A DNA stretch of 64,000 bases. Source: Selaginella moellendorffii. Taxonomy: Eukaryota; Plantae; Lycopodiophyta. The translations under genes were made by a program, and so were the position numbers. The notes beneath the pieces are model-generated. The model was not told where the DNA came from. It made no database searches and saw only the letters and a list, made by a program, of their open reading frames with translations. Below, piece by piece: positions 22,721 through 56,084 of the stretch. Location of the stretch: positions 2,592,603 through 2,656,602 of the forward strand of contig NW_003314262.1 of assembly GCF_000143415.4 (NCBI RefSeq), read 5' to 3'. Position 1 is the first letter of the stretch, and each line of letters starts with the position of its first letter.

Positions 22721-23901
22721 ATTTATAGAGTATTGGGAGACGCCATTTTGGATGTTGCTTCTTGTTCAGAGTTTAGAAGTTGCATTTGGCTTCCACAAAT
22801 ATTCTATGGAGTTGTAGAATTAGTCTTTTGACTTAGCACTTATATGATATTTATGTTATTTTGGAAGATTTTGTTTGAGTAAAATTATTATTGAGAAAAA
22901 ACAAGAGGTTTGTCATTTCAAAGTAGAATTTGTAAAAACTTTCCACTTTTCCATGAGAAGAACATGTAAGTTCAATTATTATCTTTGACTTTGTTTTAAA
23001 GATTATTTCTTGAGATAGCAAATAAACAAGAATGTATTGAAAAATAATTTTAAAGAATTCATAAAATAAAGTTAAAATTTAATGTTTTAAATTTGTATCA
23101 AGATTGGAAGATTTTGAAGTAAACCTCCCCAAAGTTATTGTTATTATTTTATATTGTTGTGGTATATATTTTACTAACAATATATTAATTGCAGAGATGA
23201 ACAATTACTTGATACATATTGAAGGGAAGGATCCGATTTGCCCTCATGCCCAACTAAAGTGAGTGAAAGGTGTAATCTTGAACTTTGAAAAATAATTAAA
23301 TTAAATTTCTTTCAAAAGTAAATTAAAACTTCAAAAAACAACTAAAAACATAACTTTTAATTTTTAAAATTAACAATTATATTAATTATTCTAAAAATAT
23401 CATGTTCATGGCCAATTATGTATTTATAAATTAAAATTTCTTTGCAATTAACCTTTTAATCTTTATAATATATAAAAGCATCACTCACAGCATAAATATT
23501 AAAATAAAGAATGGGTTAACTTTTATTTGATGTAATGCCATTAATTGTTATTCCCTTTTGTCTATTTAGTTTCACAAATTTAATCTTGCTATATTTATTT
23601 ATATTTTATTTTCAAAATTTAAATTAATATTAAAGTTGTGAGGCTTTTTATTATTATTGTAGTAAAATTTAATATCGAAAGGAGTTGTATTAAGGATAAC
23701 TCTCAATTAATTATGCCTATAAAGTGTAATGTGGATTCCCATTTCACAACATCATTCCAACTAAAGTTTAAAGTTTTCATAATTATAATTAATATTACAA
23801 TTCATCCTTTTAATTTTAATTAAACTAATTAAAAAGGCACCTTTTCGAAAATAAGTATAAATCTGTGGACCCAGAATGTGTACACTAGGGTTTATTGCAT
23901 C

Positions 23902-24525
23902 ATGAAGAGGAAGGCACAGGACGCAGAGATCCCCATGCTCGATGATCTGGAAGACGAGGTCCAAGGCGACGGATGGGAGTACGAGGGAGGCTTGGCTTGC
24001 CCTCCTTGGGACCCGGAAGCTCTCAAAAGCTTCTGTGCCATGGAGGACTGGTGTGGAGAGCCGGTGATGGCGAGAGTCAAGCCCAAAGAGCCCGCGAACA
24101 AGCCCAAGATTTCGAGCAATCCCGAGAGGCCAGAGACTCTGAGCAAGCCCAGTTCGAGCGAGCCCAAGAGGCCCAAGACTCCAAGCGAGCCCAAGCGGCC
24201 AAATATTTCGAGCGAGCCCAAGAGGCCCAAGACTTCGAGCGAGCCCAAGCGGGCAAAGGCTTCGAAAAGCTGTGGTGGTGAGGCCAAGACGAGGAAGAAC
24301 GCGTCCGCAAAGGTGACGCCCGAGCTGCGAGCGCTGCTAGCGAAGGTGAGGGCTACGCTGCCCGAGCAAATCGACTGCCCGTGGTGTGGGCGCATCTGGT
24401 GCACGAGGTTCTACGATTTCAACAATCACAAGCCTGGGCAGCCCCGGTACCATTGTAAGCCATGCAAGCGGACCTGGACCAAAGACAAGGTGCCAAGGCC
24501 AAGGAGCAAAAGGCCAGCATTCTAG
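23902..24525 (+). CDS. Atypical Dof-like zinc-finger protein, copy 1 (207 aa)
   Basis: CPWC-x22-CKPC with TRFYDFNN...QPRYHC...TWTK, aligning to the Dof consensus TKFCYYNN...QPRHFC...YWTK; Lys/Pro repeats; telo-box TAGGGTTT just upstream of the ATG. Confidence 0.8.
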   Translation: MKRKAQDAEIPMLDDLEDEVQGDGWEYEGGLACPPWDPEALKSFCAMEDWCGEPVMARVKPKEPANKPKISSNPERPETLSKPSSSEPKRPKTPSEPKRPNISSEPKRPKTSSEPKRAKASKSCGGEAKTRKNASAKVTPELRALLAKVRATLPEQIDCPWCGRIWCTRFYDFNNHKPGQPRYHCKPCKRTWTKDKVPRPRSKRPAF

Positions 24526-24844
24526 ACCATCGATCCACATGTTTCTTCTCACCTTAGATCAAAGAATCATATACAAGGGAATTTGATTTACCAGAGTTTC
24601 TAGCTTACCTGGGCTGAGCTTAAAGGTGCCAGCGTTCTGTTTTTTTTTTTGTTTTTTTCTTTTCCTCGTTTCTTCATTTCTTGGCGTACCTCTGCGTTTT
24701 TTTTCCAACACTGACTCAGAGTATAAAGCAAGACCAATGTAAGGCAGAGTATTGCAACTTCAAACAGTGAGTATTTAATAATTTGCTTCCCAAGTGCGAG
24801 AAACAACTGTACGTTTATACGTTTTTATACGTTTTGTTCTATAG

Positions 24845-25610
24845 GGTTGCGACGCGTCCATCTTGCTCGACTCGAAAGGTTCCATCAAAAGCGAAAGAGA
24901 CTCGGACAAGAACTTTGGCATCCGCCGCTTGGATTTCATCGACAGGATCAAGTTGATGCTGGAGGCCGCCTGTCCGGGAGTCGTCTCGTGCGCGGACATC
25001 ATCGTTCTGGTGGCCAGAGAATCCATCGTCTTCACCAGAGGCCCGACAATCCCCATGCTCACAGGAAGAAGAGACAGCACAGCCGCTTCCAACGCCGCAG
25101 CCGACAGGCTGTTGCCTCCAGCAACCGTAAGCGTCGACAACTTCATCAGCCTCTTCGCATCCAAGGGCCTCTCTCTCGACGAAAGCGTTGCAATCATCGG
25201 TACGTCTCAAGGCTTTTCTTTCCAGCAAACTTTCCAAGGACAATTGATCCGAACTTCTGTACTTTTGCATTCCAGGAGCTCACACAATTGGAGTCGGGCA
25301 CTGTGTCAACATTGTGAATCGGCTCTATCCAAACCAGGACAGTAAGATCAGTCTCCTGTTTGCGAGCCGGCTGAGAGTCCAGTGCCCGACGGCCAATCCC
25401 TGGATGCTCAACAACATTACAGTGATCAACAACGATATGACCAACCTCGTCTTTGACAACCAGTACTTCCGGGACCTTATAGCGCGCTTCTCCACGAACC
25501 AGCAGCTCTTCCTCAACACATTCTCTTCGGCTTTCGTCAAGCTCACGTCCAGCAATGTCTTGACAGGACAGAGTGGACAGGTTCGAAAGTACTGCCACTC
25601 AGTGAACTAG
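24845..25610 (+). pseudogene. 5'-truncated copy of the class III peroxidase (exons 2-3), copy 1
   Basis: Near-identical to 21889-22720; lacks exon 1 (signal peptide, distal His); 66-bp deletion in exon 3. Confidence 0.92.
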
Positions 25611-26049
25611 ATTTATAGAGTATTGGGGAGATGCACTTTTGGATGTTGCTTCTTGTCAAGAGTTTAGAAGTTGCATTTGGCTTCCACAAATATTGAATGG
25701 AGTCAGCACTTACATGTTATTTTGGAAGATTTTGATAGAGTAAAATTATCATTGAAAAAAAACACAAAAATATTTTGAAAAATAATTTTAAAGAATTCAT
25801 GAAATGAAGTGAAAATTTAATGTTTAAGATTTGTATCAAAATTAGAAGATCTTATAATAAACCTTTCCAAAGTTATTATTATTATTTTATATTGTTATGG
25901 TATGTAATTTACTAGTAATATATTAATTGCCGAGATAGATTGGTGGATATGGAGGAAAAGGATTTAGTTTGCCCTCAATAAGCCAGCCAAAGTAAGTGGG
26001 AGGAGTAATTTTGAACTTTGAAAAAAAAAATTTCTTTCAAAATTAAATT

Positions 26050-29000
26050 TGTGAGTGCATGGAATATGGAAAGGGAATACATGTGCATATCAATTAGCCC
26101 AAAAACCCTAGCATATATACAGGAGCGAGTGGTTCGGATTGAAACCAATCTGACGGCTACCAAAATCCCACTATGCTAATATTAATATACAGCATCGTAA
26201 CCGTACACTTGGCCCTCATATCATCCCCTCCTCTCAGAATAATGGAAGACCATCAGGGTTCTCTTGTAGACGGGCCGGGATCTGGAGGAACATCAAGAGG
26301 AGGCATCGGTGGTTCTGTAGATGGTATTAACCGCTCCTGATCCCTTTGTATGAAGCGTTTCAACCATTGCACATGCACAATCTTTGGAGGATTAGCCTGC
26401 TGGACGTCATGCCGAACCTCATAAACTTGTGGTTCAACTTGCTGCAACACACAATACGGTCCTTTCCACTGTGCAAGGAGCCCCTTAGATAAACCACATA
26501 CCGTAAGATGGGGAAAACGGACTAACACCAAATCATCCACTTTGTACTCCGCAGGTGGACGATGATGGGAGTTGTAGCGCCGTTGTTGTCCCACTTGTAC
26601 GCAGTCTAAGTGTTCGGCAGACTCTGCTCGGACAAGTGGAAGAATGCTAGTCAAATATTGATCCCATGATCTAGCATCCGCAACTCATGGCAATCGCGAA
26701 GGTAAACTCAGCTCCGTTGGTAATATTGGATCATGACCATATAAGAGTTTATATGGTGAAGCACTAACAGAACTCTACACCCCAGTGACATATGCATACC
26801 AAAGAGACGGCAAATAACCATCCCAATCCGAATGCTGAAAGTTCACATACTTTGCAATCATCCCCTTGAACGTCTGAACGAGCCGTTCCACCAGACCGTC
26901 TGATTGTGGATGATAAACACTCGTGAAAGTGTGGCAAATCCCCAACCGAGACGTCAAAACATGAAATGCCTCAGCCATAAATGCGGGACCATTATCTGAA
27001 AGAATCCGCTCTGGACAAGAATGTTAGAACACCACTCGATTGAGGAGGAAGTATCCAACAGCAGTTGTAGAGGCACTAGCAAGAGCACCAACTTCCATCC
27101 AACGAGTCAAATAGTCAGAAGCAATAATAACATACTCATTGCCAGTAATCGACCATGGAAAAGGTCCCATAAGATCAAATGCCACCAACTCAAACGGACG
27201 GGAAATTGCAATTGACTCCAACCGTCCTTCCGCTGCCGGAGGGGGAGTATTACGAGCTTGGCACCAAATGCAGCTACGCACATACCAGATAATATCACGT
27301 TGCATCTCCGGCTAATAGAAAGACCTGCGTAGCTTCTCGATTACACGGCGATGTCCCATATGCCCACCTAGAACAGGAGAATCATGGTAGGCATGGAAAA
27401 ACTACAGAATAAAGATAGAAGGCACCACCAGCCGTAAATGATCATCAAAATCTGTCCCCACAAAATAAAGAAGGCCATCTTTAAGACGATATTGAGAATG
27501 TAAATGCCGAAAAGGCAAGTCATCAGCAAGTGATGCAGGATTCTCAAACCCATCTCGAAGCCTTTGAATCCATGGCTCAATCTTTTGAGCCTCGCAAACC
27601 TCATCAAGCGAAGGTAGATCTTGCTCTGCACCTTGTGGACACTGAACATCAAGTATAGCAACTGCCGAAGGCACAGAATCCTTGTCTAGAAAATCCACAG
27701 ATGCTGGAACAATAGGCTCATTAGAAATATGAGAGGAGAGTGAAGAAGGAAGAGGAGCTCGAGAAAGGGCATCAACATCAGCCATAAAACTCCCTGGGCG
27801 GTGAATAACATCAAAATCATATATGTGAAGCTTCAAAGCCCACCGAGCAGTACGACCAACTAGGTTCTTCCGCTTTAATAATGAAGTAACAGCAGCATGG
27901 TCACCTTCAAGTAACGTCTGAGAACCATGTAGATATGCATGAAGTTTCTCAAAACCCCAAACTGCTGCTAAACACTCCTCTGTCGTGGAGTAGTTCATCA
28001 CTGCTAGTTGTAATGTACGGCTTATATATGCAATGGGATGGCGCTGATCAAGCACACTCGAGCTCTCTTGCATTAACACACCTCCAAGACCAATGTCAGA
28101 AGCATCTACTTGCAAAATAAAAGGTCGAGTGTAGTCAGGATATGCCAAAACCGGAGGAGTTGTCAATAATTCTTTGAGATCCCCGAATGCCCGCTCACAA
28201 TCTGAAGACCAAATGAAAGATGACGTTGATGACTTTAGCAACGCTCGCAATGGTGCAGTGCGATCAGAAAGATGATCCACAAAACACCTGAGATACTGCA
28301 CCTTGCCCAAGAAGCGCTGCACATCATTCACACACTTCGGAGTAGGGAACTTTAGAACAGCCACAAGTTTGTCAGGATCAACTTGCAAACCCTCACGAGA
28401 AATACGGCACCCAAAATAAGTTGTGTCCTTGGATCCAAACACACACTTCGACCGCTTCAGCTTTAAACCAATGTCACGTAGCCGATCCAACACTTTACAA
28501 ACATCACAAACGTGCTCCTCCCACATCCCCTCTGAGTGAATCAAGACATCATCAATGAAATCAGCAATCACCTCCAGCATATTGCAAAGAACCTCGTCCA
28601 TCATCTGTTGAAAAGTTGCTGGAGCATTGTTCAAACCAAATGGCATCACCAAGAACTCATACAAACCAAATGGTTTATGAAAAGCAATCTTAGGAATATC
28701 TTCTTCGACCATCAGTACTTGCTAGTACCCAGAAGCAAAATCTAGCTTGGTGAACCAACGACTTCGCCCCAAACGATCTAAGAGATCAGCAGTGTGAGGA
28801 AGAGGGTACACATCCGGGATCGTTATGTCATTTAACAGACGATAGTCGATGCAGAAACTAATACTCCTATCAGGCTTCGTCACAAGATGAGGTTCACATG
28901 CCCAAGGACTCCGCGACTTCCGAATAACACCCTTCTCCAACATCTTTTTGACATTTGCATGTAAAATCTTGATCTCCTTTGGTGACCAACGACGAACAGG

Positions 29001-31035
29001 AACCTTGATTGGACGAGCATCCCCAGTTGGAATTGGATGACGTGTGGCAATCTTGGCTCCAGACGATAGGTCAAAGTCAAAGAGATCAGAATACTCCTTC
29101 ATGAGCTTGTCAACTGCTGCAACACATAGATCGTCGGAGGGATCGGAAAAGGGAAGAGCAGAACAAGATGGAAATACAGGAGGAAATAGTGGGGAAACAA
29201 AAGTAATGGAAGCAGAGGTAGAAGTAGAGGGACAAAAAGGTACTGAAGTGAGAGGAATGGATGAAACATAAGGAAGTACAAGACAAGGGGGAGAAGCCTC
29301 AAAGTCACATTTGGCATGATTGCGCTGCAACCAATCCATACCAAGAATGAGGTCAAAAGCTTGACTCGGCACCACCCACAACGATTGCAACTCAAGCTTG
29401 AGATTGCCCACACGCACAACCAGGTCTGCCTCATCCCGTGCACATGCATGTATACGGCCGTTGCCATAAAGAATGAAAACTGGTTCCGCCGCACGACGCA
29501 AGTGTAGACGACAATGTGTGGCAATAGGTTGAGCAATAGAAGATAAACTCGAACCTGTATCAACCAATACAAAGAGAATAATAAAAGACCTCTTGTTATA
29601 AAGACGAGCTTGGAAAGTAAACATTGGATGAACTGGTGCCAAGTGAACCCCTTGATGATACTCCTAAAAGAAAGATGGAGGGGTCACTGACTTATTCGCG
29701 TAAGGTTCCTCCATTACTCGCGTGACTCCTCGTTTCCCGGATGCATCTCAGTGTCCAAACCTTCCATTGCAGCAGCACCAACGGGACGTTACTGACGCCA
29801 AGGTCTCCACCCAGGAAATGGAGGTCGCCAATCCGGAAAACGCTGACAACGCCGATAAGTATGACCAACTTCATCACATGTTCAGCAGCGAACATCACGG
29901 CCACGACCACGTCCTCGCCCGTGACCTTGGACTCGAGCAGCAGCAGCATCAACCTCCATTGGAACAAGACCATCACCCACAGAAAGTGGAGCTGAAGGAC
30001 GTGCAGCGAGAAGTGGAAGAGGCGATGTCTCATAACGTTGTGCCAAGTGAAGAGCATCATCAAGGGTGGTAGGAGCAAGTGCATGCACAAGTCCGACAAG
30101 ATCTTGACAAAGTGCTGGCCACAACATTCCTAGCTTGATCCGCTCCGACATATTTGGCTCCGCACGAAGCAAAAGACTTCGGAAACGAACACCAAATTGC
30201 ATCACCGACTCAGATGGCCCTTGGTGAAGACGATGCAATTCTTGGAAAGCATCATCACAGTTATCAGCATGTTCAAAGGCGCGTTTGAAGACATCCGAAA
30301 GAACACTCCAATCCCTGCGAGTGGCTGCTCCCAAACCGTTGTACCATTGCAACGCCGTCCCTTGGAGACATGTGGGAAACTCACGCAAACGTCAAGCATT
30401 ATCCCAAGAATGATATGTGGCAATCACTGTAAAGTGATCGAACCAATGGTACACATCATATTTTAGCTTTTTGTCATTTTTTTTCTTTTGTTCTTTCTTT
30501 TTCATTCGTCTCCATGGCAGATCAACAATCTCCTCCTTTGACTCTGGAGCAGCAGTTAGTACAATTGCTTAATGCTATGTGCTTGCAATTGAACAACCAA
30601 ACTTAGTTAATGGCGGCGTTCATGGCACATGGTACAACTCCTCTTACTCTTGGTGCCAATCCTTGTGTTCGGCCAAAGTTCTTTCACGGGAATCCTGGGG
30701 ATGCAAAAAGCTAAATCTAAACCAAAATCATGAAAGGAAATAACAAAAGAAAGGAAATAGAAAAAACTAGATCTAGACAATGCAAAAGCTAGATCTAAAT
30801 TGAAATCCCAAATCCAAGCACTCCCCAGGGACAATCAAAGGTGCCCCTCACCTCCACCAATGTAAGTGCATGGAATATAGAAAGGGAATATAGAAATGTG
30901 CATATCAATTAACCCAAAAACCCTAACTTATATATAGGAGTGAGTGGTTTGGATTGAAACCAATCCGACGGCTACCAAAATCCTACTACGTTAATATTAG
31001 TATATGGCATCATAATCGTACATTTGGCCCTCACA
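26050..31035 (-). mobile_element. Degenerate Ty3/gypsy LTR retrotransposon, copy 1 (3' LTR 26050-26220, 5' LTR 30861-31035)
   Basis: TG...CA ends; AATT TSD; PBS TGGTGGAGGTGAGGGG; PPT GAGAGGAGGGG; gag with CCHC knuckle, protease (LVDTGSS), RT (FIDDVL), RNase H (DASD), integrase (GPF, YHPQSDG, WKGPY); many stop codons. Confidence 0.95.
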
Positions 31036-31749
31036 AATTAAAATTTCAGAAAATAACTAAAAATATAGCTTTTACTTTTTTAAATTAACAATTATATATA
31101 TTATTCTAAAGATATTGTGTTCATGGCCAAGTATGTATTTATAAATTAAATTTTCTTTGCAATTAACCTTTTAATCTCTATAATATATAAAAACATCACT
31201 CACAACCTAAATATTAGGATGAAGAGTGGGCTTAAGTTTTATTTAATGTAGTGCTATTAATTATTTTTCCCTAATGTTTATCTAGTTTCACAAATTTAAT
31301 CTTGCTATATTTACTTTTATTTTATTTGCACAAATCAAATGAATATTAAAGTTGTGAGGCTTTTTATTGTTATTATAGCAAAATGTAATATCAAAAGGAG
31401 TTGTATTAAGGATAACTCTTAATTAATTATGCTTCTAAAGTTCTCTTACTGTTAGCATGGAAATCAGGGATGGGTGTTTTGCATGGCTTCGTGCCTAGAA
31501 TTTCCAAATACAAAGCCTTTTTTTTAATCTAAATGCTCTTCAGTATTAATACTGCCTTGCAAGACTGAAAGTGCAATGTGGATTCCCATTTTGCAACATC
31601 ATTCCAACTAAAGTTTAAAGTTAGCATAATTATAAATAATATTACAAGTCATCCTTTTCATTTTTAATTAAACTAATTAAAAAGGCACCTTTTTGAGAAT
31701 AAGTATAAATGTGTGGACCCAGAATGTGTACACTAGGGTTTATTGCATC

Positions 31750-32382
31750 ATGAAGAGAAAGGCGCAGGACGCAGAGATCCCCATGCTCGATGATCTGGAA
31801 GACGAGGTCCAAGGCGACGGATGGGAGTACGAGGGAGGCTTGGCTTGCCCTCCTTGGGACCCGGAAGCTCTCAAAAGCTTCTGTGCCATGGAGGACTGGT
31901 GTGGAGAGCCGGTGATGGCGAGAGTCAAGCCCAAAGAGCCCGCGAACAAGCCCAAGATTTCGAGCAATCCCGAGAGGCCAGAGACTCTGAGCAAGCCCAA
32001 GAGAAAGAGTTCGAGCGAGCCCAAGAGGCCCAAGACTCCAAGCGAGCCCAAGCGGCCAAATATTTCGAGCGAGCCCAAGAGGCCCAAGACTTCGAGCGAG
32101 CCCAAGCGGGCAAAGGCTTCGAAAAGCTGTGGTGGTGAGGCCAAGACGAGGAAGAACGCGTCCGCAAAGGTGACGCCCGAGCTGCGAGCGCTGCTAGCGA
32201 AGGTGAGGGCTACGCTGCCCGAGCAAATCGACTGCCCGTGGTGTGGGCGCATCTGGTGCACGAGGTTCTACGATTTCAACAATTACAAGCCTGGGCAGCC
32301 GAGGTACCACTGTAAGCCATGCAAGCTTACCTGGACCAAAGACAAGGTGCCAAGGCCAAGGAGCAAAAGGCCAGCATTCTAG
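31750..32382 (+). CDS. Atypical Dof-like zinc-finger protein, copy 2 (210 aa)
   Basis: Intact ORF, near-identical to copy 1. Confidence 0.8.
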   Translation: MKRKAQDAEIPMLDDLEDEVQGDGWEYEGGLACPPWDPEALKSFCAMEDWCGEPVMARVKPKEPANKPKISSNPERPETLSKPKRKSSSEPKRPKTPSEPKRPNISSEPKRPKTSSEPKRAKASKSCGGEAKTRKNASAKVTPELRALLAKVRATLPEQIDCPWCGRIWCTRFYDFNNYKPGQPRYHCKPCKLTWTKDKVPRPRSKRPAF

Positions 32383-32701
32383 ACCATCGATCCACATGTT
32401 TCTTCTCACCTTAGATCAAAGAATCATATACAAGGGAATTTGATTTACCAGAGTTTCTAGCTTACCTGGGCTGAGCTTAAAGGTGCCAGCGTTCTGTTTT
32501 TTTTTTTGTTTTTTTCTTTTCCTCGTTTCTTCATTTCTTGGCGTACCTCTGCGTTTTTTTTCCAACACTGACTCAGAGTATAAAGCAAGACCAATGTAAG
32601 GCAGAGTATTGCAACTTCAAACAGTGAGTATTTAATAATTTGCTTCCCAAGTGCGAGAAACAACTGTACGTTTATACGTTTTTATACGTTTTGTTCTATA
32701 G

Positions 32702-33458
32702 GGTTGCGACGCGTCCATCTTGCTCGACTCGAAAGGTTCCATCAAAAGCGAAAGAGACTCGGACAAGAACTTTGGCATCCGCCGCTTGGATTTCATCAAC
32801 AGGATCATGGAGGCCGCCTGTCCGGGAGTCGTCTCGTGCGCGGACATCATCGTTCTGGTGGCCAGAGAATCCATCGTCTTCACCGGAGGCCCGACAATCC
32901 CCATGCTCACAGGAAGAAGAGACAGCACAGCCGCTTCCAACGCCGCAGCCGACAGGCTGTTGCCTCCAGCAACCGTAAGCGTCGACAACTTCATCAGCCT
33001 CTTCGCATCCAAGGGCCTCTCTCTCGACGAAAGCGTTGCAATCATCGGTACGTCTCAAGGCTTTTCTTTCCAGCAAACTTTCCAAGGACAATTGATCCGA
33101 ACTTCTGTACTTTTGCATTCCAGGAGCTCACACAATTGGAGTCGGGCACTGTGTCAACATTGTGAATCGGCTCTATCCAAACCAGGACAGTAAGATCAGT
33201 CTCCTGTTTGCGAGCCGGCTGAGAGTCCAGTGCCCGACGGCCAATCCCTGGATGCTCAACAACATTACAGTGATCAACAACGATATGACCAACCTCGTCT
33301 TTGACAACCAGTACTTCCGGGACCTTATAGCGCGCTTCTCCACGAACCAGTAGCTCTTCCTCGACACATTCTCTTCAGCTTTCGTCAAGCTCACGTCCAG
33401 CAATGTCTTGACAGGACAGAGTGGACAGGTTCGAAAGTACTGCCACTCAGTGAACTAG
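32702..33458 (+). pseudogene. 5'-truncated peroxidase copy 2
   Basis: Same truncation and 66-bp deletion, plus a private 9-bp deletion and a premature TAG at 33351-33353. Confidence 0.92.
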
Positions 33459-34599
33459 ATTTATAGAGTATTGGGGAGATGCACTTTTGGATGTTGCTTC
33501 TTGTCAAGAGTTTAGAAGTTGCATTTGGCTTCCACAAATATTGAATGGAGTCAGCACTTATATGTTATTTTGGAAGATTTTGATAGAGTAAAATTATCAT
33601 TGAAAAAAAACACAAAAATATTTTGAAAAATAATTTTAAAGAATTCATGAAATGAAGTTAAAATTTAATGTTTAAGATTTGTATCAAAATTAAAAGATCT
33701 TATAATAAACCTTTCCAAAGTTATTATTATTATTTTATATTGTTATGGTATGTAATTTACTAGTAATATATTAATTGCCGAGATAGATTGGTGGATATGG
33801 AGGAAAAGGATTTAGTTTGCCCTCAATAAGCCAGCCAAAGTAAGTGGGAGGAGTAATTTTGAACTTTGAAAAAAAAAATTTCTTTCAAAATTAAATTAAA
33901 ACTTCAGAAAATAACTAAAAATATAGCTTTTACTTTTTTAATTTAACAATTATATATATTATTCTAAAGATTGTGTTGGCCAAGTATGTATTTATAAATT
34001 AAATTTTCTTTGCAATTAACCTTTTAATCTCTATAATATATAAAAAACAATCACTCACAGCCTAAATATTAGGATGAAGAGTGAGCTTAAGTTTTATTTA
34101 ATGTAGTGCTATTAATTATTATTCTCTTTTGTCTATCTAGTTTCACAAATTTAATCTTGCTATATTTATTTATATTTTATTTGCACAAGTTATATTAATA
34201 TTAAAGTTGTGAGGCTTTTTGCTGTTATTATAGCAAGATTTAATATCAAAGGGAGTTGCATTAAGGATAACTCTTAATTAATTATGCTTTTAAAGTTCTT
34301 TTACTATTAGCATGGAAATCAGCGATGGGTGTTTTGCATGGCTTCGTGCCTGGAATTTCCAAATACAAAGCCTTTTCTTGATCCAAATGCTCTTCAGTAT
34401 TAATACTGCCTTTCAAGACTGAAAGTGTAATGTGGCTTCCCATTTCACAACATCATTCCAACTAAAGCTTAAAGTTAGCATAATTATAATTAATATTACA
34501 ATTCATTTTCATTTTAATTAAACTAATTAAAAAGGCACCTTTTTGAGAATAAGTATAAATGTGTGGACCCAGAATGTGTACACTAGGGTTTATTGCATC

Positions 34600-35205: not shown

Positions 35206-35625
35206 ACCATCGATCCACATGTTTCTTCTCACCTTAGATCAAAGAATCATATACAAACTTTTCTTACACGCTCGCTCATTGGAGTTTGTCTGTGAGCGCG
35301 TTGTTGGCACTGGAAAGAAAGAACGAAGGGGAATTTGATTTACCAGAATTTCTAGCTTGCTACACCCACTTGGAATATCAGAAATGAAGAAACGAGGAAA
35401 AGAAAAGAAAACAGAACGCTACGTTTATACACCACGCATCTTTAAAATTTTAAAGCTTTTTGGATTCATAGTATAAAGCAAGAACAATGTAGGCAAAGTA
35501 TTGCAACTTCAAACAGTAGAGTCTTTCATAATTTGCTTCCCAAGTGCGAGAAACAACTGTAAAATTTCCAGTGTCAAAATTTTCGAAGAGCCAATACAAA
35601 GAATCTCGTGATGCTCTGCGAGGCA

Positions 35626-38526: not shown

Positions 38527-38845
38527 ACCATCGATCCACATGTTTCTTCTCACCTTAGATCAAAGAATCATATACAAGGGAATTTGATTTACCAGAGTTT
38601 CTAGCTTACCTGGGCTGAGCTTAAAGGTGCCAGCGTTCTGTTTTTTTTTTTGTTTTTTTCTTTTCCTCGTTTCTTCATTTCTTGGCGTACCTCTGCGTTT
38701 TTTTTCCAACACTGACTCAGAGTATAAAGCAAGACCAATGTAAGGCAGAGTATTGCAACTTCAAACAGTGAGTATTTAATAATTTGCTTCCCAAGTGCGA
38801 GAAACAACTGTACGTTTATACGTTTTTATACGTTTTGTTCTATAG

Positions 38846-45076: not shown

Positions 45077-45789
45077 AATTAAAATTTCAGAAAATAACTA
45101 AAAATATAGCTTTTACTTTTTTAAATTAACAATTATATATATTATTCTAAAGATATTGTGTTCATGGCCAAGTATGTATTTATAAATTAAATTTTCTTTG
45201 CAATTAACCTTTTAATCTCTATAATATATAAAAACATCACTCACAACCTAAATATTAGGATGAAGAGTGGGCTTAAGTTTTATTTAATGTAGTGCTATTA
45301 ATTATTTTTCCCTTTTGTTTATCTAGTTTCACAAATTTAATCTTGCTATATTTACTTTTATTTTATTTGCACAAATCAAATGAATATTAAAGTTGTGAGG
45401 CTTTTTATTGTTATTATAGCAAAATGTAATATCAAAAGGAGTTGTATTAAGGATAACTCTTAATTAATTATGCTTTTAAAGTTCTCTTACTGTTAGCATG
45501 GAAATCAGGGATGGGTGTTTTGCATGGCTTCGTGCCTAGAATTTCCAAATACAAAGCCTTTTTTTTTATCTAAATGCTCTTCAGTATTAATACTGCCTTG
45601 CAAGACTGAAAGTGCAATGTGGATTCACATTTCACAACATCATTCCAACTAAAGTTTAAAGTTAGCATAATTATAAATAATATTACAATTCATCCTTTTC
45701 ATTTTAATTAAACTAATTAAAAAGGCACCTTTTTGAGAATAAGTATAAATGTGTGGACCCAGAATGTGTACACTAGGGTTTATTGCATC

Positions 45790-46422
45790 ATGAAGAGAAA
45801 GGCGCAGGACGCAGAGATCCCCATGCTCGATGATCTGGAAGACGAGGTCCAAGGCGATGGATGGGAGTACGAGGGAGGCTTGGCTTGCCCTCCTTGGGAC
45901 CCGGAAGCTCTCAAAAGCTTCTGTGCCATGGAGGACTGGTGTGGAGAGCCGGTGATGGCGAGAGTCAAGCCCAAAGAGCCCGCGAACAAGCCCAAGATTT
46001 CGAGCAATCCCGAGAGGCCAGAGACTCTGAGCAAGCCCAAGAGAAAGAGTTCGAGCGAGCCCAAGAGGCCCAAGACTCCAAGCGAGCCCAAGCGGCCAAA
46101 TATTTCGAGCGAGCCCAAGAGGCCCAAGACTTCGAGCGAGCCCAAGCGGGCAAAGGCTTCGAAAAGCTGTGGTGGTGAGGCCAAGACGAGGAAGAACGCG
46201 TCCGCAAAGGTGACGCCCGAGCTGCGAGCGCTGCTAGCGAAGGTGAGGGCTACGCTGCCCGAGCAAATCGACTGCCCGTGGTGTGGGCGCATCTGGTGCA
46301 CGAGGTTCTACGATTTCAACAATTACAAGCCTGGGCAGCCGAGGTACCACTGTAAGCCATGCAAGCTTACCTGGACCAAAGACAAGGTGCCAAGGCCAAG
46401 GAGCAAAAGGCCAGCATTCTAG
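45790..46422 (+). CDS. Atypical Dof-like zinc-finger protein, copy 5 (210 aa)
   Basis: Intact ORF; protein identical to copies 2 and 4. Confidence 0.8.
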   Translation: MKRKAQDAEIPMLDDLEDEVQGDGWEYEGGLACPPWDPEALKSFCAMEDWCGEPVMARVKPKEPANKPKISSNPERPETLSKPKRKSSSEPKRPKTPSEPKRPNISSEPKRPKTSSEPKRAKASKSCGGEAKTRKNASAKVTPELRALLAKVRATLPEQIDCPWCGRIWCTRFYDFNNYKPGQPRYHCKPCKLTWTKDKVPRPRSKRPAF

Positions 46423-46742
46423 ACCATCGATCCACATGTTTCTTCTCACCTTAGATCAAAGAATCATATACAAGGGAATTTGATTTACCAGAGTTTCTAG
46501 CTTACCTGGGCTGAGCTTAAAGGTGCCAGCGTTCTGTTTTTTTTTTTTGTTTTTTTCTTTTCCTCGTTTCTTCATTTCTTGGCGTACCTCTGCGTTTTTT
46601 TTCCAACACTGACTCAGAGTATAAAGCAAGACCAATGTAAGGCAGAGTATTGCAACTTCAAACAGTGAGTATTTAATAATTTGCTTCCCAAGTGCGAGAA
46701 ACAACTGTACGTTTATACGTTTTTATACGTTTTGTTCTATAG

Positions 46743-47508
46743 GGTTGCGACGCGTCCATCTTGCTCGACTCGAAAGGTTCCATCAAAAGCGAAAGAGACT
46801 CGGACAAGAACTTTGGCATCCGCCGCTTGGATTTCATCGACAGGATCAAGTTGATGCTGGAGGCCGCCTGTCCGGGAGTCGTCTCGTGCGCGGACATCAT
46901 CGTTCTGGTGGCCAGAGAATCCATCGTCTTCACCGGAGGCCCGACAATCCCCATGCTCACAGGAAGAAGAGACAGCACAGCCGCTTCCAACGCCGCAGCC
47001 GACAGGCTGTTGCCTCCAGCAACCGTAAGCGTCGACAACTTCATCAGCCTCTTCGCATCCAAGGGCCTCTCTCTCGACGAAAGCGTTGCAATCATCGGTA
47101 CGTCTCAAGGCTTTTCTTTCCAGCAAACTTTCCAAGGACAATTGATCCGAACTTCTGTACTTTTGCATTCCAGGAGCTCACACAATTGGAGTCGGGCACT
47201 GTGTCAACATTGTGAATCGGCTCTATCCAAACCAGGACAGTAAGATCAGTCTCCTGTTTGCGAGCCGGCTGAGAGTCCAGTGCCCGACGGCCAATCCCTG
47301 GATGCTCAACAACATTACAGTGATCAACAACGATATGACCAACCTCGTCTTTGACAACCAGTACTTCCGGGACCTTATAGCGCGCTTCTCCACGAACCAG
47401 CAGCTCTTCCTCAACACATTCTCTTCGGCTTTCGTCAAGCTCACGTCCAGCAATGTCTTGACAGGACAGAGTGGACAGGTTCGAAAGTACTGCCACTCAG
47501 TGAACTAG
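46743..47508 (+). pseudogene. 5'-truncated peroxidase copy 4
   Basis: Same truncation and 66-bp deletion. Confidence 0.92.
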
Positions 47509-47947
47509 ATTTATAGAGTATTGGGGAGATGCACTTTTGGATGTTGCTTCTTGTCAAGAGTTTAGAAGTTGCATTTGGCTTCCACAAATATTGAATGGAG
47601 TCAGCACTTACATGTTATTTTGGAAGATTTTGATAGAGTAAAATTATCATTGAAAAAAAACACAAAAATATTTTGAAAAATAATTTTAAAGAATTCATGA
47701 AATGAAGTTAAAATTTAATGTTTAAGATTTGTATCAAAATTAGAAGATCTTATAATAAACCTTTCCAAAGTTATTATTATTATTTTATATTGTTATGGTA
47801 TGTAATTTACTAGTAATATATTAATTGCCGAGATAGATTGGTGGATATGGAGGAAAAGGATTTAGTTTGCCCTCAATAAGCCAGCCAAAGTAAGTGGGAG
47901 GAGTAATTTTGAACTTTGAAAAAAAAAAATTCTTTCAAAATTAAATT

Positions 47948-50900
47948 TGTGAGTGCATGGAATATGGAAAGGGAATACATGTGCATATCAATTAGCCCAA
48001 AAACCCTAGCTTATATACAGGAGCGAGTGGTTCGGATTGAAACCAATCTGACGGCTACCAAAATCCCACTATGCTAATATTAATATACGGCATCGTAACC
48101 GTACACTTGGCCCTCATATCATCCCCTCCTCTCAGAATAATGGAAGACCATCAGGGTTCTCTTGTAGACGGGCCGGGATCTGGAGGAACATCAAGAGGAG
48201 GCATCGGTGGTTCTGTAGATGGTATTAACCGCTCCTGATCCCTTTGTATAAAGCGTTTCAACCGTTGCACATGCACAATCTTTGGAGGATTGGCCTGCTG
48301 GACGTCATGCCGAACCTCATAAACTTGTGGTTCAACTTGCTGCAACACACAATACGGTCCTTTCCACTGTGCAAGGAGCCCCTTAGATAAACCACATACC
48401 GTAAGATGGGGAAAACGGACTAACACCAAATCATCCACTTTGTACTCCGCAGGTGGACGATGATGGGAGTTGTAGCGCTGTTGTTGTCCCACTTGTATGC
48501 AGTCTAAGTGTTCGGTAGACTCTGCTCGGACAAGTGGAAAAATGCTAGTCAAATATTGATCCCATGATCTAGCATCCGCAACTCATGGCAATCGCGAAGG
48601 TAAACTCAGCTCCATTGGTAATATTGGATCATGACCATATAGGAATTTATATGGTGAAGCACTAATAGAACTCTACACCCCAGTGACATATGCATACCAA
48701 AGAGACGGCAAATAACCATCCCAATCCGAATGCTGAAAGTTCACATACTTTGCAATCATCCCCTTGAACGTCTGAACGAGCCGTTCCACCAGACCGTCTG
48801 ATTGTGGATGATAAACACTCGTGAAAGTGTGGCGAATCCCCAACCGAGACGTCAAAACATGAAATGCCTCAGCCATAAATGCGGGACCATTATCCGAAAG
48901 AATCCGCTCTGGACAAGAATGTTAGAACACCACTCGATTGAGGAGGAAGTATCCAACAGCAGTTGTAGAGGCACTAGCAAGAGCACCAACTTCCACCCAA
49001 CGAGTCAAATAGTCAGAAGCAATAATAACATACTCATTGCCAGCAGTCGACCATGGAAAAGGTCCCATAAGATCAAATGCCACCAACTCAAACGGACGGG
49101 AAACTGCAATTGACTCCAATCGTCCTTCCGCTGCCCGAGGGGGAGTATTACGAGCTTGGCACCAAATGCAGCTACGCACATACCGGATAATATCACATCG
49201 CATCTCCGGCCAATAGAAAGACCTGCGTAGCTTCTCGATTACATGGCGATGTCCCATATGCCCACCTAGAACAGGAGAATCATGGTAGGCATGGAAAAAC
49301 TACAGAATAAAGATAGAAGGCACCACCAGCCGTAAATGATCATCAAGATCTGTCCCCACAAAATAAAGAATGCCATTTTTAAGATGATATTGAGAATGTA
49401 AATGCCGAAAAGGCAAGTCATCAGCAAGTGATGCAGGATTCTCAAACCCATCTCGAAGCCTTTGAATCCATGGCTCAATCTTTTGAGCCTCACGAACCTC
49501 ATCAAGCGAAGGTAGATCTTGCTCTGCACCTTGTGGACACTGAACATCAAGTATAGCAACTGCCGAAGGCACAGAATCCTCGTCTAAAAAATCCACAGAT
49601 GCTGGAACAATAGGCTCATTAGAAATATGAGAGGAGAGTGAAGAAGGAAGAGGAGCTCGAGAAAGGGCATCAACATCAGCCATAAAACTCCCTGGGCGGT
49701 GAATAACATCAAAATCATATATGTGAAGCTTCAAAGCCCACCGAACAGTACGACCAACTAGGTTCTTCCACTTTAATAATGAAGTAACAACAGCATGGTC
49801 ACCTTCAAGTAACGTCTGAGAACCATGTAGATATGCATGAAGTTTCTCAAAACCCCAAACTGCTGCTAAACACTCCTCTGTCGTGGAGTAGTTCATCATT
49901 GCTAGTTGTAATGTACGGCTTATATATGCAATGGGATGGCGCTGATCAAGCACACTTGAGCTCTCTTGCATTAACACACCTCCAAGACCAATGTCAGAAG
50001 CATCCACTTGCAAAATAAAAGGTCGAGTGTAGTCAGGATATGCCAAAACCGGAGGAGTTGTCAATAATTCTTTGAGATCCCCGAATGCCCGCTCACAATC
50101 TGAAGACCAAATGAAAGATGACGTTGATGACTTTAGCAACGCTCGCAATGGTGCAGTGCGATCAGAAAGATGATCCACAAAACACTCGAGATACTGCACC
50201 TTGCCCAAGAAGCGCTACACATCATTCACACACTTCGGAGTAGGGAACTTTAGAACAGCCACAAGTTTGTCAGGATCAACTTGCAAACCCTCACGAGAAA
50301 TACGGTACCCAAAATAAGTTGTGTCCTTGGATCCAAACACGCACTTCGACCGCTTCAGCTTTAAACCAACGTCGCGTAGCCGATCCAACACTTTACAAAC
50401 ATCACAAACGTGCTCCTCCCACATCCCCTCTGAGTGGATCAAGACATCATCAATGAAATCAGCAGTCACCTCCAGCATATTGCAAAGAACCTCGTCCATC
50501 ATCTGTTGAAAAGTTGCTGGAGCATTGTTCAAACCAAATGGCATCACCAAGAACTCATACAAACCAAATGGTTTACGAAAAGCAATCTTAGGAATATCTT
50601 CTTCAACCATCAGTACTTGCCAGTACCCAGAAGCAAAATCTAGCTTGGTGAACCAACGACTTCGCCCCAAACGATCTAAGAGATCAGTAGTGTGAGGAAG
50701 AGGGTACACATCCGGGATCGTTATGTCATTTAACAGACGATAGTCGATGCAGAAACTAATACTCCTATCAGGCTTCGTCACAAGATGAGGTTCACATGCC
50801 CAAGGACTCCGCGACTTCCGAATAACACCCTTCTCCAACATCTTTTTGACATTTGCACGTAAAATCTTGATCTCCTTTGGTGACCAACGACGAACAGGAA

Positions 50901-52931
50901 CCTTGATTGGACGAGCATCCCTAGTTGGAATCAGATGACGTGTGGCAATCTTGGCTCTAGACGATAGGTCAAAGTCAAAGAGATCAGAATACTCCTTCAT
51001 GAGCTTGTCAACTGCTGCAACACAAAGATCGTCGGAGGGATCGGAAAAGGGAAGAGCAGAACAAGATGGAAATACAGGAGGAAATAGTGGGGAAACAAAA
51101 GTAATGGAAGCAGAGGTAGAAGTAGAGGGACAAAAAAGTACTGAAGTGAGAGGAATGGATGAAACATAAGGAAGTACGAGACAAGGGGGAGAAGCCTCAA
51201 AGTCACATTTGGCATGATTGCGCTGCAACCAATCCATACCAAGAATGAGGTCAAAAGCTTGACTTGGCACCACCCACAACGACTGCAACTCAAGCTTGAG
51301 ATTGCCCACACGCACAACCAGGTCTGCCTCATCCCGTGCACATGCATGTATACGGCTATTGCCATAAAGAATGAAAACTGGTTCCGCCGCACGCGCAAGT
51401 GTAGATGACAATGTGTGGCAATAGGTCGAGCAATAGAAGATAAACTCGAACCTGTATCAACCAATACAGAGAGAATAATGAAAGACCTCTTGTTATAAAG
51501 ACGAGCTTGGAAATTAAACATTGGATGAACTGGTGCCGAGTGAACCCCTTGATGATACTCCCAAAAGAAAGATGGAGGGGTCACTGACTTATTCGCGTAA
51601 GGTTCCTCCATTACTCGCGTGACTCCTCGTTTCCCGGATGCATCTCAGTGTCCAAACCTTCCATTGCAGCAGCACCAACGGGACGTTACTGACGCCAAGG
51701 TCTCCACCCAGGAAATGGAGGTCGCCAATCCGGAAAACGCTGACAACGCCGATAAGTATGACCAACTTCATCACATGTTCAGCAGCGAACATCACGGCCA
51801 CGACCACGTCCTCGCCCGTGACCTTGGACTCGAGCAGCAGCAGCATCAACCTCCATTGGAACAAGACCATCACCCACAGAAAGTGGAGCTGAAGGACGTG
51901 CAGCGAGAAGTGGAAGAGGCGATGTCTCATAACGTTGTGCCAAGCGAAGAGCATCATCAAGGGTGGTAGGAGCAAGTGCATGCACAAGTCCGACAAGATC
52001 TTGACAAAGTGCTGGCCACAACATTCCTAGCTTGATCCGCTCCGACATATTTGGCTCCGCACGAAGCAAAAGACTTCGGAAACGAACACCAAATTGCATC
52101 ACCGACTCAGATGGCCCTTGGTGAAGACGATGCAATTCTTGGAAAGCATCATCACAGTTATCGGCATGTTCAAAGGCGCGTTTGAAGACATCCAGAAGAA
52201 CACTCCAATCCCTGCGAGTGGCTGCTCCCAAACCGTTGTACCATTGCAACGCCGTCCCTTGGAGACACGTGGGAAACTCACGCAAACGTCAAGCATTATC
52301 CCAAGAATGATATGTGGCAATCACTGTAAAGTGATCGAACCAATGGTACACATCATATTCTAGCTTTTTGTCATTTTTTTTCTTTTGCTCTTTCTTTTTC
52401 ATTCGTCTCCATGGCAGATCAACAATCTCCTCCTTTGACTCTGGAGCAGCAGTTAGTACAATTGCTTAATGCTATGTGCTTGCAATTGAACAACCAAACT
52501 TAGTTAATGGCGGCGTTTATGGCACATGGTACAACTCCTCTTGCTCTTGGTGCCAATCCTCGTGTTCGGCCAAAGTTCTTTCACGGGAATCCTGGGGATG
52601 CAAAAGCTAAATCTAAACCAAAATCGTGAAAGGAAATAACAAAAGAAAGGAAATAGAAAAAACTAGATCTAGACAATGCAAAAGCTAGATCTAAATTGAA
52701 ATCCCAAATCCAAGCACTCCCCAGGGACAACCAAAGGTGCCCCTCACCTCCACCAATGTGAGTGCATGGAATATAGAAAGGGAATATAGAAATGTGCATA
52801 TCAATTAACCTAAAAACCCTAACTTATATATAGGAGCGAGTGGTCCGGATTGAAACCAATCCGACGGCTACCAAAATCCTACTATGCTAATATTAGTATA
52901 TGGCATCGTAATCGTACATTTGGCCCTCACA
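47948..52931 (-). mobile_element. Degenerate Ty3/gypsy element, copy 3 (LTRs 47948-48118 and 52757-52931)
   Basis: Same flanks and AATT TSD as copies 1 and 2. Confidence 0.95.
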
Positions 52932-53645
52932 AATTAAAATTTCAGAAAATAACTAAAAATATAGCTTTTACTTTTTTAAATTAACAATTATATATATTAT
53001 TCTAAAGATATTGTGTTCATGGCCAAGTATGTATTTATAAATTAAATTTTCTTTGCAATTAACCTTTTAATCTCTATAATATATAAAAACATCACTCACA
53101 ACCTAAATATTAGGATGAAGAGTGGGCTTAAGTTTTATTTAATGTAGTGCTATTAATTATTTTTCCCTTTTGTTTATCTAGTTTCACAAATTTAATCTTG
53201 CTATATTTATTTTTATTTTATTTGCACAAATCAAATGAATATTAAAGTTGTGAGGCTTTTTATTGTTATTATAGCAAAATGTAATATCAAAAGGAGTTGT
53301 ATTAAGGATAACTCTTAATTAATTATGCTTTTAAAGTTCTCTTACTGTTAGCATGGAAATCAGGGATGGGTGTTTTGCATGGCTTCGTGCCTAGAATTTC
53401 CAAATACAAAGCCTTTTTTTTTATCTAAATGCTCTTCAGTATTAATACTGCCTTGCAAGACTGAAAGTGCAATGTGGATTCCCATTTTGCAACATCATTC
53501 CAACTAAAGTTTAAAGTTAGCATAATTATAAATAATATTACAAGTCATCCTTTTCATTTTTAATTAAACTAATTAAAAAGGCACCTTTTTGAGAATAAGT
53601 ATAAATGTGTGGACCCAGAATGTGTACACTAGGGTTTATTGCATC

Positions 53646-54242
53646 ATGAAGAGAAAGGCGCAGGACGCAGAGATCCCCATGCTCGATGATCTGGAAGACG
53701 AGGTCCAAGGCGACGGATGGGAGTACGAGGGAGGCTTGGCTTGCCCTCCTTGGGACCCGGAAGCTCTCAAAAGCTTCTGTGCCATGGAGGACTGGTGTGG
53801 AGAGCCGGTGATGGCGAGAGTCAAGCCCAAAGAGCCCGCGAACAAGCCCAAGATTTCGAGCAATCCCGAGAGGCCAGAGACTCTGAGCAAGCCCAAGAGA
53901 AAGAGTTCGAGCGAGCCCAAGACTCCAAGCGAGCCCAAGCGGCCAAATATTTCGAGCGAGCCCAAGAGGCCCAAGACTTCGAAAAGCTGTGGTGGTGAGG
54001 CCAAGACGAGGAAGAACGCGTCCGCAAAGGTGACGCCCGAGCTGCGAGCGCTGCTAGCGAAGGTGAGAGCTACGCTGCCCGAGCAAATCGACTGCCCGTG
54101 GTGTGGGCGCATCTGGTGCACGAGGTTCTACGATTTCAACAATTACAAGCCTGGGCAGCCGAGGTACCACTGTAAGCCATGCAAGCTTACCTGGACCAAA
54201 GACAAGGTGCCAAGGCCAAGGAGCAAAAGGCTAGCATTCTAG
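53646..54242 (+). CDS. Atypical Dof-like zinc-finger protein, copy 6 (198 aa)
   Basis: Intact ORF; in-frame losses in the repeat tract; ends RLAF. Confidence 0.8.
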   Translation: MKRKAQDAEIPMLDDLEDEVQGDGWEYEGGLACPPWDPEALKSFCAMEDWCGEPVMARVKPKEPANKPKISSNPERPETLSKPKRKSSSEPKTPSEPKRPNISSEPKRPKTSKSCGGEAKTRKNASAKVTPELRALLAKVRATLPEQIDCPWCGRIWCTRFYDFNNYKPGQPRYHCKPCKLTWTKDKVPRPRSKRLAF

Positions 54243-54667
54243 ACCATCGATCCACATGTTTCTTCTCACCTTAGATCAAAGAATCATATACAAACTTTTC
54301 TTACACGCTCGCTCATTGGAGTTTGTCTGTGAGCGCGTTGTTGGCACTGGAAAGAAAGAACGAAGGGGAATTTGATTTACCAGAATTTCTAGCTTGCTAC
54401 ACCCACTTGGAATATCAGAAATGAAGAAACGAGGAAAAGAAAAGAAAAGAAAACAGAACGCTACGTTTATACACCACGCATCTTTAAAATTTTAAAGCTT
54501 TTTGGATTCATAGTATAAAGCAAGAACAATGTAGGCAAAGTATTGCAACTTCAAACAGTAGAGTCTTTCATAATTTGCTTCCCAAGTGCGAGAAACAACT
54601 GTAAAATTTCCAGTGTCAAAATTTTCGAAGAGCCAATACAAAGAATCTCGTGATGCTCTGCGAGGCA

Positions 54668-55916
54668 TCAATCCGAGCCATGACTCGCGTTCCAACTTTG
54701 CAGGAAGCTCTTACCGGCTTCGTACGTGGACCAGCTGATGGCTGCCGCAGGAGTGTGAAACAAAACTCTAGGCTTTAACCCCTTGAACAGGGCCGCCGAG
54801 CCCTCACGGCGAACAATCTCCTTCACCACTTGTGTGACGGAGCTGGTTGAATACTTGGTTGCACCGCAAACACCCTGAGAACAGCCACATCCAGAATTCA
54901 GAGCCATCGCAACTAAACTAGCATACGAAACGAACACTCATCTACATGCACAAGCATCCTAGAACTCAAGAAAGAAACGCTAAACCAGACCACAAGAACC
55001 AACACTATAAACTCTAAACAAAAAATACAACTCTGTGAAAGCAAAACTTTCAACTTCCAATCATCTAAGAAGAGTGGAACAAAGAAACAACTGAAAGCTT
55101 GATGAAACACTCGCTCTCAGAGAGAAAAGAGACACATACCTGGCACTGGAGCCTCGTCTTGACAACATCAAACGGGGTAGTGATCCCACTCGCCAGCGCT
55201 CCGGCGGTGCCACCGGCGGCAACATGCGTCAACAAGTGATCGTCCCCAGCCTGATCCGGATACAACTCGGACAAGATCTTCTTGGCAGCCTCATACGCCG
55301 CAAAGTGTACCCCGGTGAACGGAATGTTCATCAAAACCGTGGTCCTGTACGAGGCGTAGAACCCCGCAAGCCCCTCGCTCCTGTAAATCCTCGCAACGCA
55401 GTCCGCCACCCCCTGGTATGGACTCCGGCTTAGCTGCAACCGCTGCTTCACCACGTCCATGGGCGTGAGCACCGTGTCGCTAGCGACGGTGGCGCAAGCC
55501 CCGGACGCCATATGAGCTAGAGGCTGGTGGCCATCGCGGTTGCCTCCAAACTTCTCCTTGAAGAACTCGTAGCATCCAAAGTAGACCGCGTGGGACGGCC
55601 CAGCGCCGAGAACCATGGCTCCCAATCCTCGGTAGAACCCCGCCAGACCTTCCAGGCGCATGATCGATCCCACTGCCTTGGTGAGCGATGGAACTGGGGA
55701 GCCGCACGGGCAGGACGAAGGAGCCGATAGCATCTGCACGCGCGTCTTGACAGTGTCGACCGGGAACATTGCCGTGTGCTCTACCACGCCGGCGATGGAT
55801 CCCGCCAGCATGTATTGCCGAAATCCCAAGCCGTCGTGGGGACCTTTCTCGTGCGCCATTGCTCTAGCGTAGGCGGCGCCACTGATGGACAGCGGGAGAT
55901 TTGTCTCTGCTGCCAT
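54668..55916 (-). CDS. Mitoferrin-like mitochondrial iron carrier (SLC25/MRS3-4 family); exons 55916-55140, 54874-54668
   Basis: Three Px[DE]xx[KR]x[RK] signatures (PVDTVKTR, PMDVVKQR, PFDVVKTR); mitoferrin-type GAGPSHAVYF, MNIPF and P.AAISWSTYE motifs. Confidence 0.9.
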
Positions 55917-56084
55917 TGCCAATGGCGCTGCTGCCCTGAGAGGATCCAAAATCGCGAGAGAGAGAGAGAGATCAAACCGATGGATCGCCCGAGATTTCCC
56001 TGAAACGTACCATGAGATCGAGCGAGCAAGCACGCGCCAATGCTGCCGATGCCAATGCCGATACCGCGCGGCGCAGGTTAGAAT

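Follow-up and report, generated by a model that had tools for sequence, protein, structure and literature searches.

The six Dof-like genes

The window analyzed here is a 64,000-nucleotide stretch of the Selaginella moellendorffii genome (NCBI RefSeq assembly GCF_000143415.4, contig NW_003314262.1, positions 2,592,603 to 2,656,602 of the forward strand), and all coordinates below are positions within it. It contains a tandem array of a small, intronless gene for a Dof-like protein, together with truncated pieces of a class III peroxidase gene, dead Ty3/gypsy retrotransposon copies and two copies of a mitoferrin-like carrier gene. Comparison of the window with itself shows six direct (head-to-tail) copies of a unit whose length is heterogeneous (2.9-7.9 kb), each with one Dof-like gene:

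23902-24525 (+): D1, 207 aa; 9-bp deletion in the repeat tract; 6 changes clustered in the last 45 bp
31750-32382 (+): D2, 210 aa
34600-35205 (+): D3, 201 aa; carrier-adjacent type; 27-bp deletion; older 5' half
37894-38526 (+): D4, 210 aa; sister of D1
45790-46422 (+): D5, 210 aa; sister of D2
53646-54242 (+): D6, 198 aa; recombinant; 9-bp and 27-bp deletions

The six open reading frames (ORFs) are 597-633 bp long, all multiples of three with a single terminal stop codon each, and the proteins they encode are mutually 95-99% identical. Four indel events, of 9, 9, 27 and 27 bp, separate the coding sequences (CDSs); all four are in frame and all fall in a 27-bp tandem repeat within the gene. 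This agrees with an earlier reading made from the letters alone (the sequence-only reading), which had described six open, intronless copies that differ only by in-frame indels. The 5' half of D3 is 91-97% identical to the other copies. D6 is a mosaic: its 5' half is D5-like and its 3' half is identical to D3, and the switch point, near 53982 and inside the 27-bp repeat, appears to be the scar of a crossover or conversion. An antisense ORF of 161-173 aa overlaps each copy (23892-24404 (-) and equivalents), and is probably a by-product of repeat composition.

Nested architecture of the array

The array has a 3 x 2 organization, in which a three-copy inner array has been duplicated to six. The two outer units (22780-36866 and 36863-55919) meet at a single junction and are collinear, both running spacer, Dof-like gene, peroxidase piece, gypsy, Dof-like gene, peroxidase piece, spacer with or without gypsy, Dof-like gene and carrier. 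The nesting of inner and outer units had been proposed in the sequence-only reading, and the coordinates of the outer units and two junctions bear it out:

24812-24821: inner junction J1, where the Dof 3' flank passes through a 10-nt filler into peroxidase intron 1
36863-36866: outer junction J2, joining the carrier 5' end to the peroxidase 3' flank (equivalent of 22780)
22813-23720: spacer S0, AT-rich, with an empty gypsy target site (AAATT) at 23320-23324
36867-37718: spacer S3, an old, rearranged copy of S0 with 75-93% identity

J1 is identical in four units (it recurs at ~32669-32678, 38813-38822 and 46710-46719) and therefore reflects one founding event, of ~2.95 kb; the Dof 3' flank which precedes it is shared, up to 24811, with the flanks of D3 and D6. 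J2 is unique, displays a 4-bp microhomology (TTGC), and is the head-to-tail scar expected from tandem duplication of the whole segment.

Across the units of D1, D2, D4 and D5, the sole informative site pattern is D1 with D4 and D2 with D5 (8 sites, none conflicting), and these sister units differ by about 0.4-0.6% outside the gypsy element. The stretches from D3 and from D6 to their respective carriers are 99.5-100% identical (35083 to 36677), while identity blocks along the array as a whole span 75% to 100%. Old relics are thus present in the form of S0 and S3 and the 5' half of D3, and the 99-100% blocks therefore represent recent copying or homogenization on an older skeleton. A spacer piece of ~190 bp directly upstream of D4 (37502-37688) is inverted relative to its counterparts at 23516-23701 and in other spacers.

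The gypsy element is a passenger

Three of the units carry a Ty3/gypsy element:

26050-31033 (-): gypsy copy 1, defined by its long terminal repeats (LTRs), target duplication and domain order
40051-45074 (-): gypsy copy 2, which holds the assembly gap 40843-40942
47948-52929 (-): gypsy copy 3, with the same flanks as copies 1 and 2

The element has 173-bp LTRs with TG..CA ends and encodes gag, protease, reverse transcriptase, RNase H and integrase in that order. The 5-bp target duplication (AAATT) and the flanks are identical in all three copies, and besides the empty target in S0 there is another, again with a single AAATT, in spacer S2 (33893-33897). LTRs of its own, a single target duplication and empty sites therefore indicate one insertion that was passively copied. 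They also rule out the notion that the 2.3-kb blocks flanking each gypsy copy are its LTRs, which would have made the Dof ORF LTR-borne. Each copy contains several in-frame stop codons, some shared and some private, in keeping with the earlier description of three dead copies.

The gypsy copies have diverged about 6 times faster than the rest of the units: the alignment of the three large units shows 119 substitutions in 4934 bp of gypsy, against 8 in 2059 bp of sequence which is neither transposable element nor CDS. C>T or G>A changes account for 73% of the gypsy substitutions, and occur in CG, CHG and CHH contexts alike. This pattern, which is a methylation-type mutation signature, ends at the borders of the element. 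The element thus has the hallmarks of Ty3/gypsy LTR retrotransposons, from the LTRs, TG..CA ends and 5-bp target duplication to the order of its coding domains, but at this locus it is a passenger rather than a driver, dead and hypermutated from C to T.

Peroxidase pieces and carrier copies

Upstream of the array lies the peroxidase gene from which the pieces derive, and a piece follows each of D1, D2, D4 and D5:

20893-22720 (+): parent class III peroxidase gene, identified by Pfam PF00141 (E = 1e-45) and frame reading
24822-25703 (+): peroxidase piece P1, with a remnant of intron 1, exon 2, exon 3 and 3' flank
32679-33551 (+): peroxidase piece P2, with a private 9-bp in-frame deletion and one premature stop
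38823-39704 (+): peroxidase piece P4, after D4
46720-47601 (+): peroxidase piece P5, after D5

In the parent, the first coding stretch ends at ~21831 and is followed by intron 1 (~21832-21888, 57 bp), exon 2 (21889-22246), intron 2 and exon 3 (22319-22720). Since the pieces begin within intron 1, at the position equivalent to 21866, none of them has exon 1, as the sequence-only reading had stated for its four fragments. All four share a 66-bp in-frame deletion in exon 3 (parent 22524-22589), and of the 16 exon differences which they share against the parent, 13 are G>A or C>T changes from parent to piece. The retained exons are free of stops and frameshifts in three of the four pieces, with exon indels that are only in frame (66 and 9 bp). 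A search for annotated proteins corresponding to the peroxidase fragments returned none within the length range covered. In frame ahead of the parent peroxidase ORF, 21150-21640 encodes ~160 codons of Gly-rich tandem repeats with periods of 51-69 bp, an N-terminal extension that would be unusual for a class III peroxidase, if it is truly in the transcript.

Each outer unit ends in a copy of the mitoferrin-like carrier gene:

54671-55919 (-): intact mitoferrin-like carrier, exons 55134-55919 and 54671-54877; XP_002961990.2
35629-36866 (-): second mitoferrin-like carrier copy; XP_002961989.2, SELMODRAFT_76024

The intact gene matches XP_002961990.2 at 99.6-100% identity by tblastn, as does the second copy its own records. 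The second copy is cut 4 bp upstream of the ATG, with homology ending at 36866 (equivalent to 55919), and has an 11-bp deletion corresponding to 55851-55861. The sequence-only reading took it to be frameshifted and to have lost its promoter. The deletion and the cut close to the ATG uphold that description, but the copy still has a complete three-repeat carrier ORF from Met36, and is annotated as protein-coding by both JGI and RefSeq. The XP_002961989.2 model gives this promoterless copy a new first exon (MGISAS; 37910-37928 (-)), joined to 36833 (-) across a GT-AG intron of ~1.07 kb. The ATG of the new exon falls in the first 35 bp of the D4 CDS, on the opposite strand, and in the RefSeq model exon and 11-bp deletion together restore the carrier frame. 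XP_002961989.2 may thus represent a chimeric transcript from a divergent promoter.

A divergent Dof finger at the C-terminus

The repeated gene encodes a protein of ~210 aa with an acidic head containing a conserved W..GL.CPPWDP.AL motif, a PK-rich 9-aa repeat, a helix and a C-terminal finger. The finger matches the Pfam Dof profile (PF02701) over positions 3-40 of 59 with 32.9 bits, against a gathering cut-off of 26.6, and matches the Dof domain of CDF1 (8xuf) by sequence with E = 2e-6. An AlphaFold2 (AF2) model with a confidence (pLDDT) of 75 has chain C of the same entry as its best PDB match (8xuf_C; target-normalized TM-score 0.78, root-mean-square deviation 1.6 Å across 48 columns), a fold match to be read with the caveat that the AF2 input alignment included canonical Dofs.

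Like Dof transcription factors, the protein displays a four-Cys zinc ribbon of the form CPxC...NNY..QPR..C..C..WT. It differs from them in having FYDF for FCYY and TW for RYW, and the spacing of the finger is C-x2-C-x22-C-x2-C in all six copies and in the paralogue P0002, while the canonical Dofs retrieved have an x21 spacer. Of the ~52-aa canonical Dof domain, the second half (GG.LRNVPVGGG.RK) is absent, and in its place the copies have a basic tail, KDKVPRPRSKRPAF, and then the stop codon. The finger is therefore at the extreme C-terminus, behind the acidic head and PK-rich repeat. We conclude, on grounds of sequence and predicted fold, that the gene is a divergent, spikemoss-specific offshoot of the Dof family, and that it probably encodes a functional, lineage-specific DNA-binding protein with a C-terminal Dof-type zinc ribbon.

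An exhaustive HMMER scan of 1.84 billion representatives found full-length relatives only in S. moellendorffii (SELMODRAFT_411893 and XP_024524267.1), and so the gene is lineage-specific, as had been suspected. The paralogue XP_024524267.1 is 42% identical and has the same architecture. The repeated ORF has one close protein match, SELMODRAFT_411893, which is of the carrier-adjacent (D3/D6) type and lies on a 2.47-Mb scaffold beside a single carrier gene, presumably from the other haplotype. A literature search found no paper that mentions the Dof-like gene or SELMODRAFT_411893.

The finger's third Cys codon, TGT, is followed by AAG, which yields a consensus GTAAG splice donor. This donor is used by the JGI model of SELMODRAFT_411893, with an intron corresponding to 35135-35238 (and equivalents in the other copies) and, as a result, an odd C-terminus. 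Since the modeled intron removes the last Cys pair of the finger, the model is either spurious or an isoform without the finger. Two sequences from public read assemblies, P0005 and P0008, have two or three tandem non-canonical Dof-like fingers per chain (FRFFNNH..QPRYKC).

Genomic setting and assembly

The surroundings of the array are ordinary and gene-dense, in the order telomerase reverse transcriptase, three pentatricopeptide repeat (PPR) genes, lycopene cyclase, NIF phosphatase, peroxidase, array, carrier and SF1-like splicing factor. The telomerase reverse transcriptase gene (Telomerase_RBD and RVT_1 domains; 1-1635) is cut by the start of the window, and the PPR genes downstream of it occupy 2308-4215, 10982-13078 (-) and 13090-15147. 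Rfam and tRNA scans found no RNA genes in the window.

The 100-N gap at 40843-40942 interrupts gypsy copy 2 in its integrase part. On both sides of the gap the sequence is collinear with gypsy copies 1 and 3, in which 50 bp occupy the place of the gap; since the element is dead, the reading frame across it is moot. The gap divides the array so that D1-D4 are on one contig and D5-D6 on the other, and the join rests on the assembly. Both carrier proteins (XP_002961990.2 and XP_002961989.2/SELMODRAFT_76024) are recorded from the 6.18-Mb scaffold of S. moellendorffii. The alternate haplotype has its own scaffold, that of 2.47 Mb, on which one carrier adjoins SELMODRAFT_411893. A separate 3.9-kb contig has a protein model, XP_002994750.2, which combines the N-terminus of the truncated carrier with substitutions of the second haplotype; judged from proteins only, this contig would encode the second-haplotype version of the truncated carrier copy.

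Intactness of the Dof-like genes and the case for selection

The sequence-only reading held that the Dof-like gene alone stays intact in every copy. Its six ORFs are indeed open, but "alone" is too strong for an array in which the second carrier copy retains its ORF from Met36. That the passengers were broken before they were copied has held up: the damage was done by the two founding breakpoints, which fell inside them, and does not reflect decay alongside a protected Dof-like gene.

We wondered whether the state of the Dof-like genes indicates selection. The six CDSs display 11 synonymous and 11 non-synonymous events, and the resulting dN/dS (omega 0.27-0.37, one-sided p = 0.003-0.018) is below 1. 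However, a dead control, the exons left in the peroxidase pieces, gives the same ratio when compared to the parent gene (9 non-synonymous and 12 synonymous; Fisher p = 0.76), and dN/dS therefore cannot serve as proof of selection here. The dead control probably behaves in this way because C-to-T and G-to-A changes at GC-rich third positions are mostly synonymous. The restriction to in-frame indels is no proof either: all four fall within the 27-bp repeat, in which slippage necessarily preserves the frame, and the dead peroxidase exons likewise have only indels that are multiples of three. The four youngest copies differ at three sites, all synonymous, and are thus uninformative on selection.

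In simulations, the probability that none of the six copies acquires a stop or a frameshift is 0.13-0.28 with the 22 observed substitutions. It falls to 0.01-0.05 only at a rate scaled to the AT-rich spacer by D3 (~6.5%). The D3 CDS is 2-3 times less diverged than that adjacent spacer, and changes in the D3 lineage are mostly non-synonymous. We believe that long-term constraint on the gene is probable.

Proposed history of the locus

The ancestral order was presumably peroxidase, AT-rich spacer, Dof-like gene and mitoferrin-like carrier, the last two convergent. J1 shows that a non-homologous tandem duplication came first: its ~2.95 kb began in peroxidase intron 1 and reached ~290 bp beyond the stop codon of the Dof-like gene, so that no other gene was complete in the resulting unit. 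One Ty3/gypsy element then inserted into a spacer, duplicating AAATT, and was already dead when later copied. In a further step, to which J2 attests, the three-copy array was tandemly duplicated into the 3 + 3 arrangement; the duplicated segment had one end in the peroxidase 3' flank and the other 4 bp upstream of the carrier ATG. Finally, to judge by the mosaic identity, exchange between units by unequal crossing-over or gene conversion homogenized blocks to 99-100%; it also turned D6 into a D5/D3 recombinant and left the last unit with a gypsy-bearing spacer.

The best-supported reading is that the array is genuine, a nested tandem segmental duplication of very recent date, and that it can be accounted for without dosage selection (probability about 0.7). 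That every copy has a whole Dof-like gene is due to its position between the breakpoints and to the youth of the copies, which have had too little time to decay. Recent neutral duplication, which the sequence-only reading had kept as its alternative, is the better supported of its inferences. Some of the results weigh against this reading: S0 and S3 are old and rearranged, which does not fit a single recent event and calls for later homogenization; the simulated probability at the spacer rate, together with an omega of ~0.3, hints at constraint on the older lineages; and, with a gap in a three-copy repeat, the copy number of the array could be off by at least one unit.

That six copies were kept intact because more of the DNA-binding protein is advantageous was, alongside selfish amplification, the leading inference of the sequence-only reading. 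It would account for the low omega, for the D3 CDS being less diverged than its spacer, for the small probability of six intact copies at the spacer rate, and for the escape of the non-transposon parts of the units from the C-to-T hypermutation of the embedded gypsy. But with the same ratio of changes in the dead peroxidase pieces, so few differences among the youngest copies, mostly non-synonymous changes in the D3 lineage and an appreciable chance of intactness under the observed substitutions, it has gained no support, and we consider dosage selection unlikely. A related idea, about which we are more doubtful still, is that tandem arrays of a Selaginella-specific family, whose small proteins end in a non-canonical Dof finger, have repeatedly formed and been retained; its copies would be transcriptionally active islands that escape methylation-type mutation, and one of them may supply the promoterless carrier copy with a divergent promoter and a first exon.

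Haplotype stacking or a wrong join at the gap could have inflated part of the copy number. The published assembly reportedly contains both haplotypes, the gap sits within a repeat present three times, and the copies are 98-99.9% alike, which is comparable to allelic divergence. Yet the sequence that contains J1 and J2 is free of gaps, the left contig by itself has four copies and J2, the copies are structurally distinct (private deletions, presence or absence of gypsy, an inversion), and the other haplotype is represented by separate records, all of which make such an artefact very unlikely. The suggestion that the Dof-like gene is the cargo of a mobile element, or was spread by gypsy, owed its appeal to the element within three units and to the 2.3-kb flanking blocks that first resembled long LTRs. 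It is already largely refuted, and we hold it to be highly improbable: the gypsy element is a single, passively copied insertion with short LTRs; all copies are head-to-tail at one locus with a common J1 (a genome-wide search for dispersed copies was not part of this comparison); the unit has no RNA genes; and around it there are no terminal repeats or target duplications, the ORF being flanked only by AT-rich, chance inverted repeats. The selfish amplification offered in the sequence-only reading is thus unsupported.

Comparison with other tandem arrays

The array is a tandem gene cluster of the ordinary kind, of which plant resistance-gene clusters are an example. Tandemly arrayed genes that go back to one non-homologous duplication and later unequal crossing-over share with this locus the head-to-tail units, a unique microhomology junction, neighbours truncated at the breakpoints, a recombinant copy, homogenized blocks of 99-100% identity and a genome rich in tandem duplicates. 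The locus differs in its two nested levels (3 x 2), in the dead retrotransposon carried as a passenger, and in that the amplified gene is unannotated, lineage-specific and small. The ELIP arrays of Selaginella lepidophylla are another example of such arrays (PMC5750206), and S. moellendorffii has 6693 tandem gene duplicates without whole-genome duplication (PMC5750206).

With macrosatellites of the D4Z4/DUX4 type, the array has in common an intronless ORF for a DNA-binding protein in each tandem unit. It differs from them in having only six copies, heterogeneous units and clear segmental-duplication junctions, and array-wide silencing is not evident, the non-transposon parts being without the methylation-type mutation signature.

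The locus is a clean, datable example of how new gene copies arise in a gene-dense plant genome without whole-genome duplication, and displays two junctions with microhomology or filler, a passenger retrotransposon and later unequal crossing-over. It also calls for caution, as the presence of a sole intact gene in an amplified unit can reflect the position of the breakpoints and the youth of the copies. Should recurrent amplification of the family prove true, it would point to a dosage-dependent or rapidly evolving regulatory function rather than neutral churn. If its copies are expressed, the array would provide a handle on the role of this spikemoss-specific offshoot of the Dof family.

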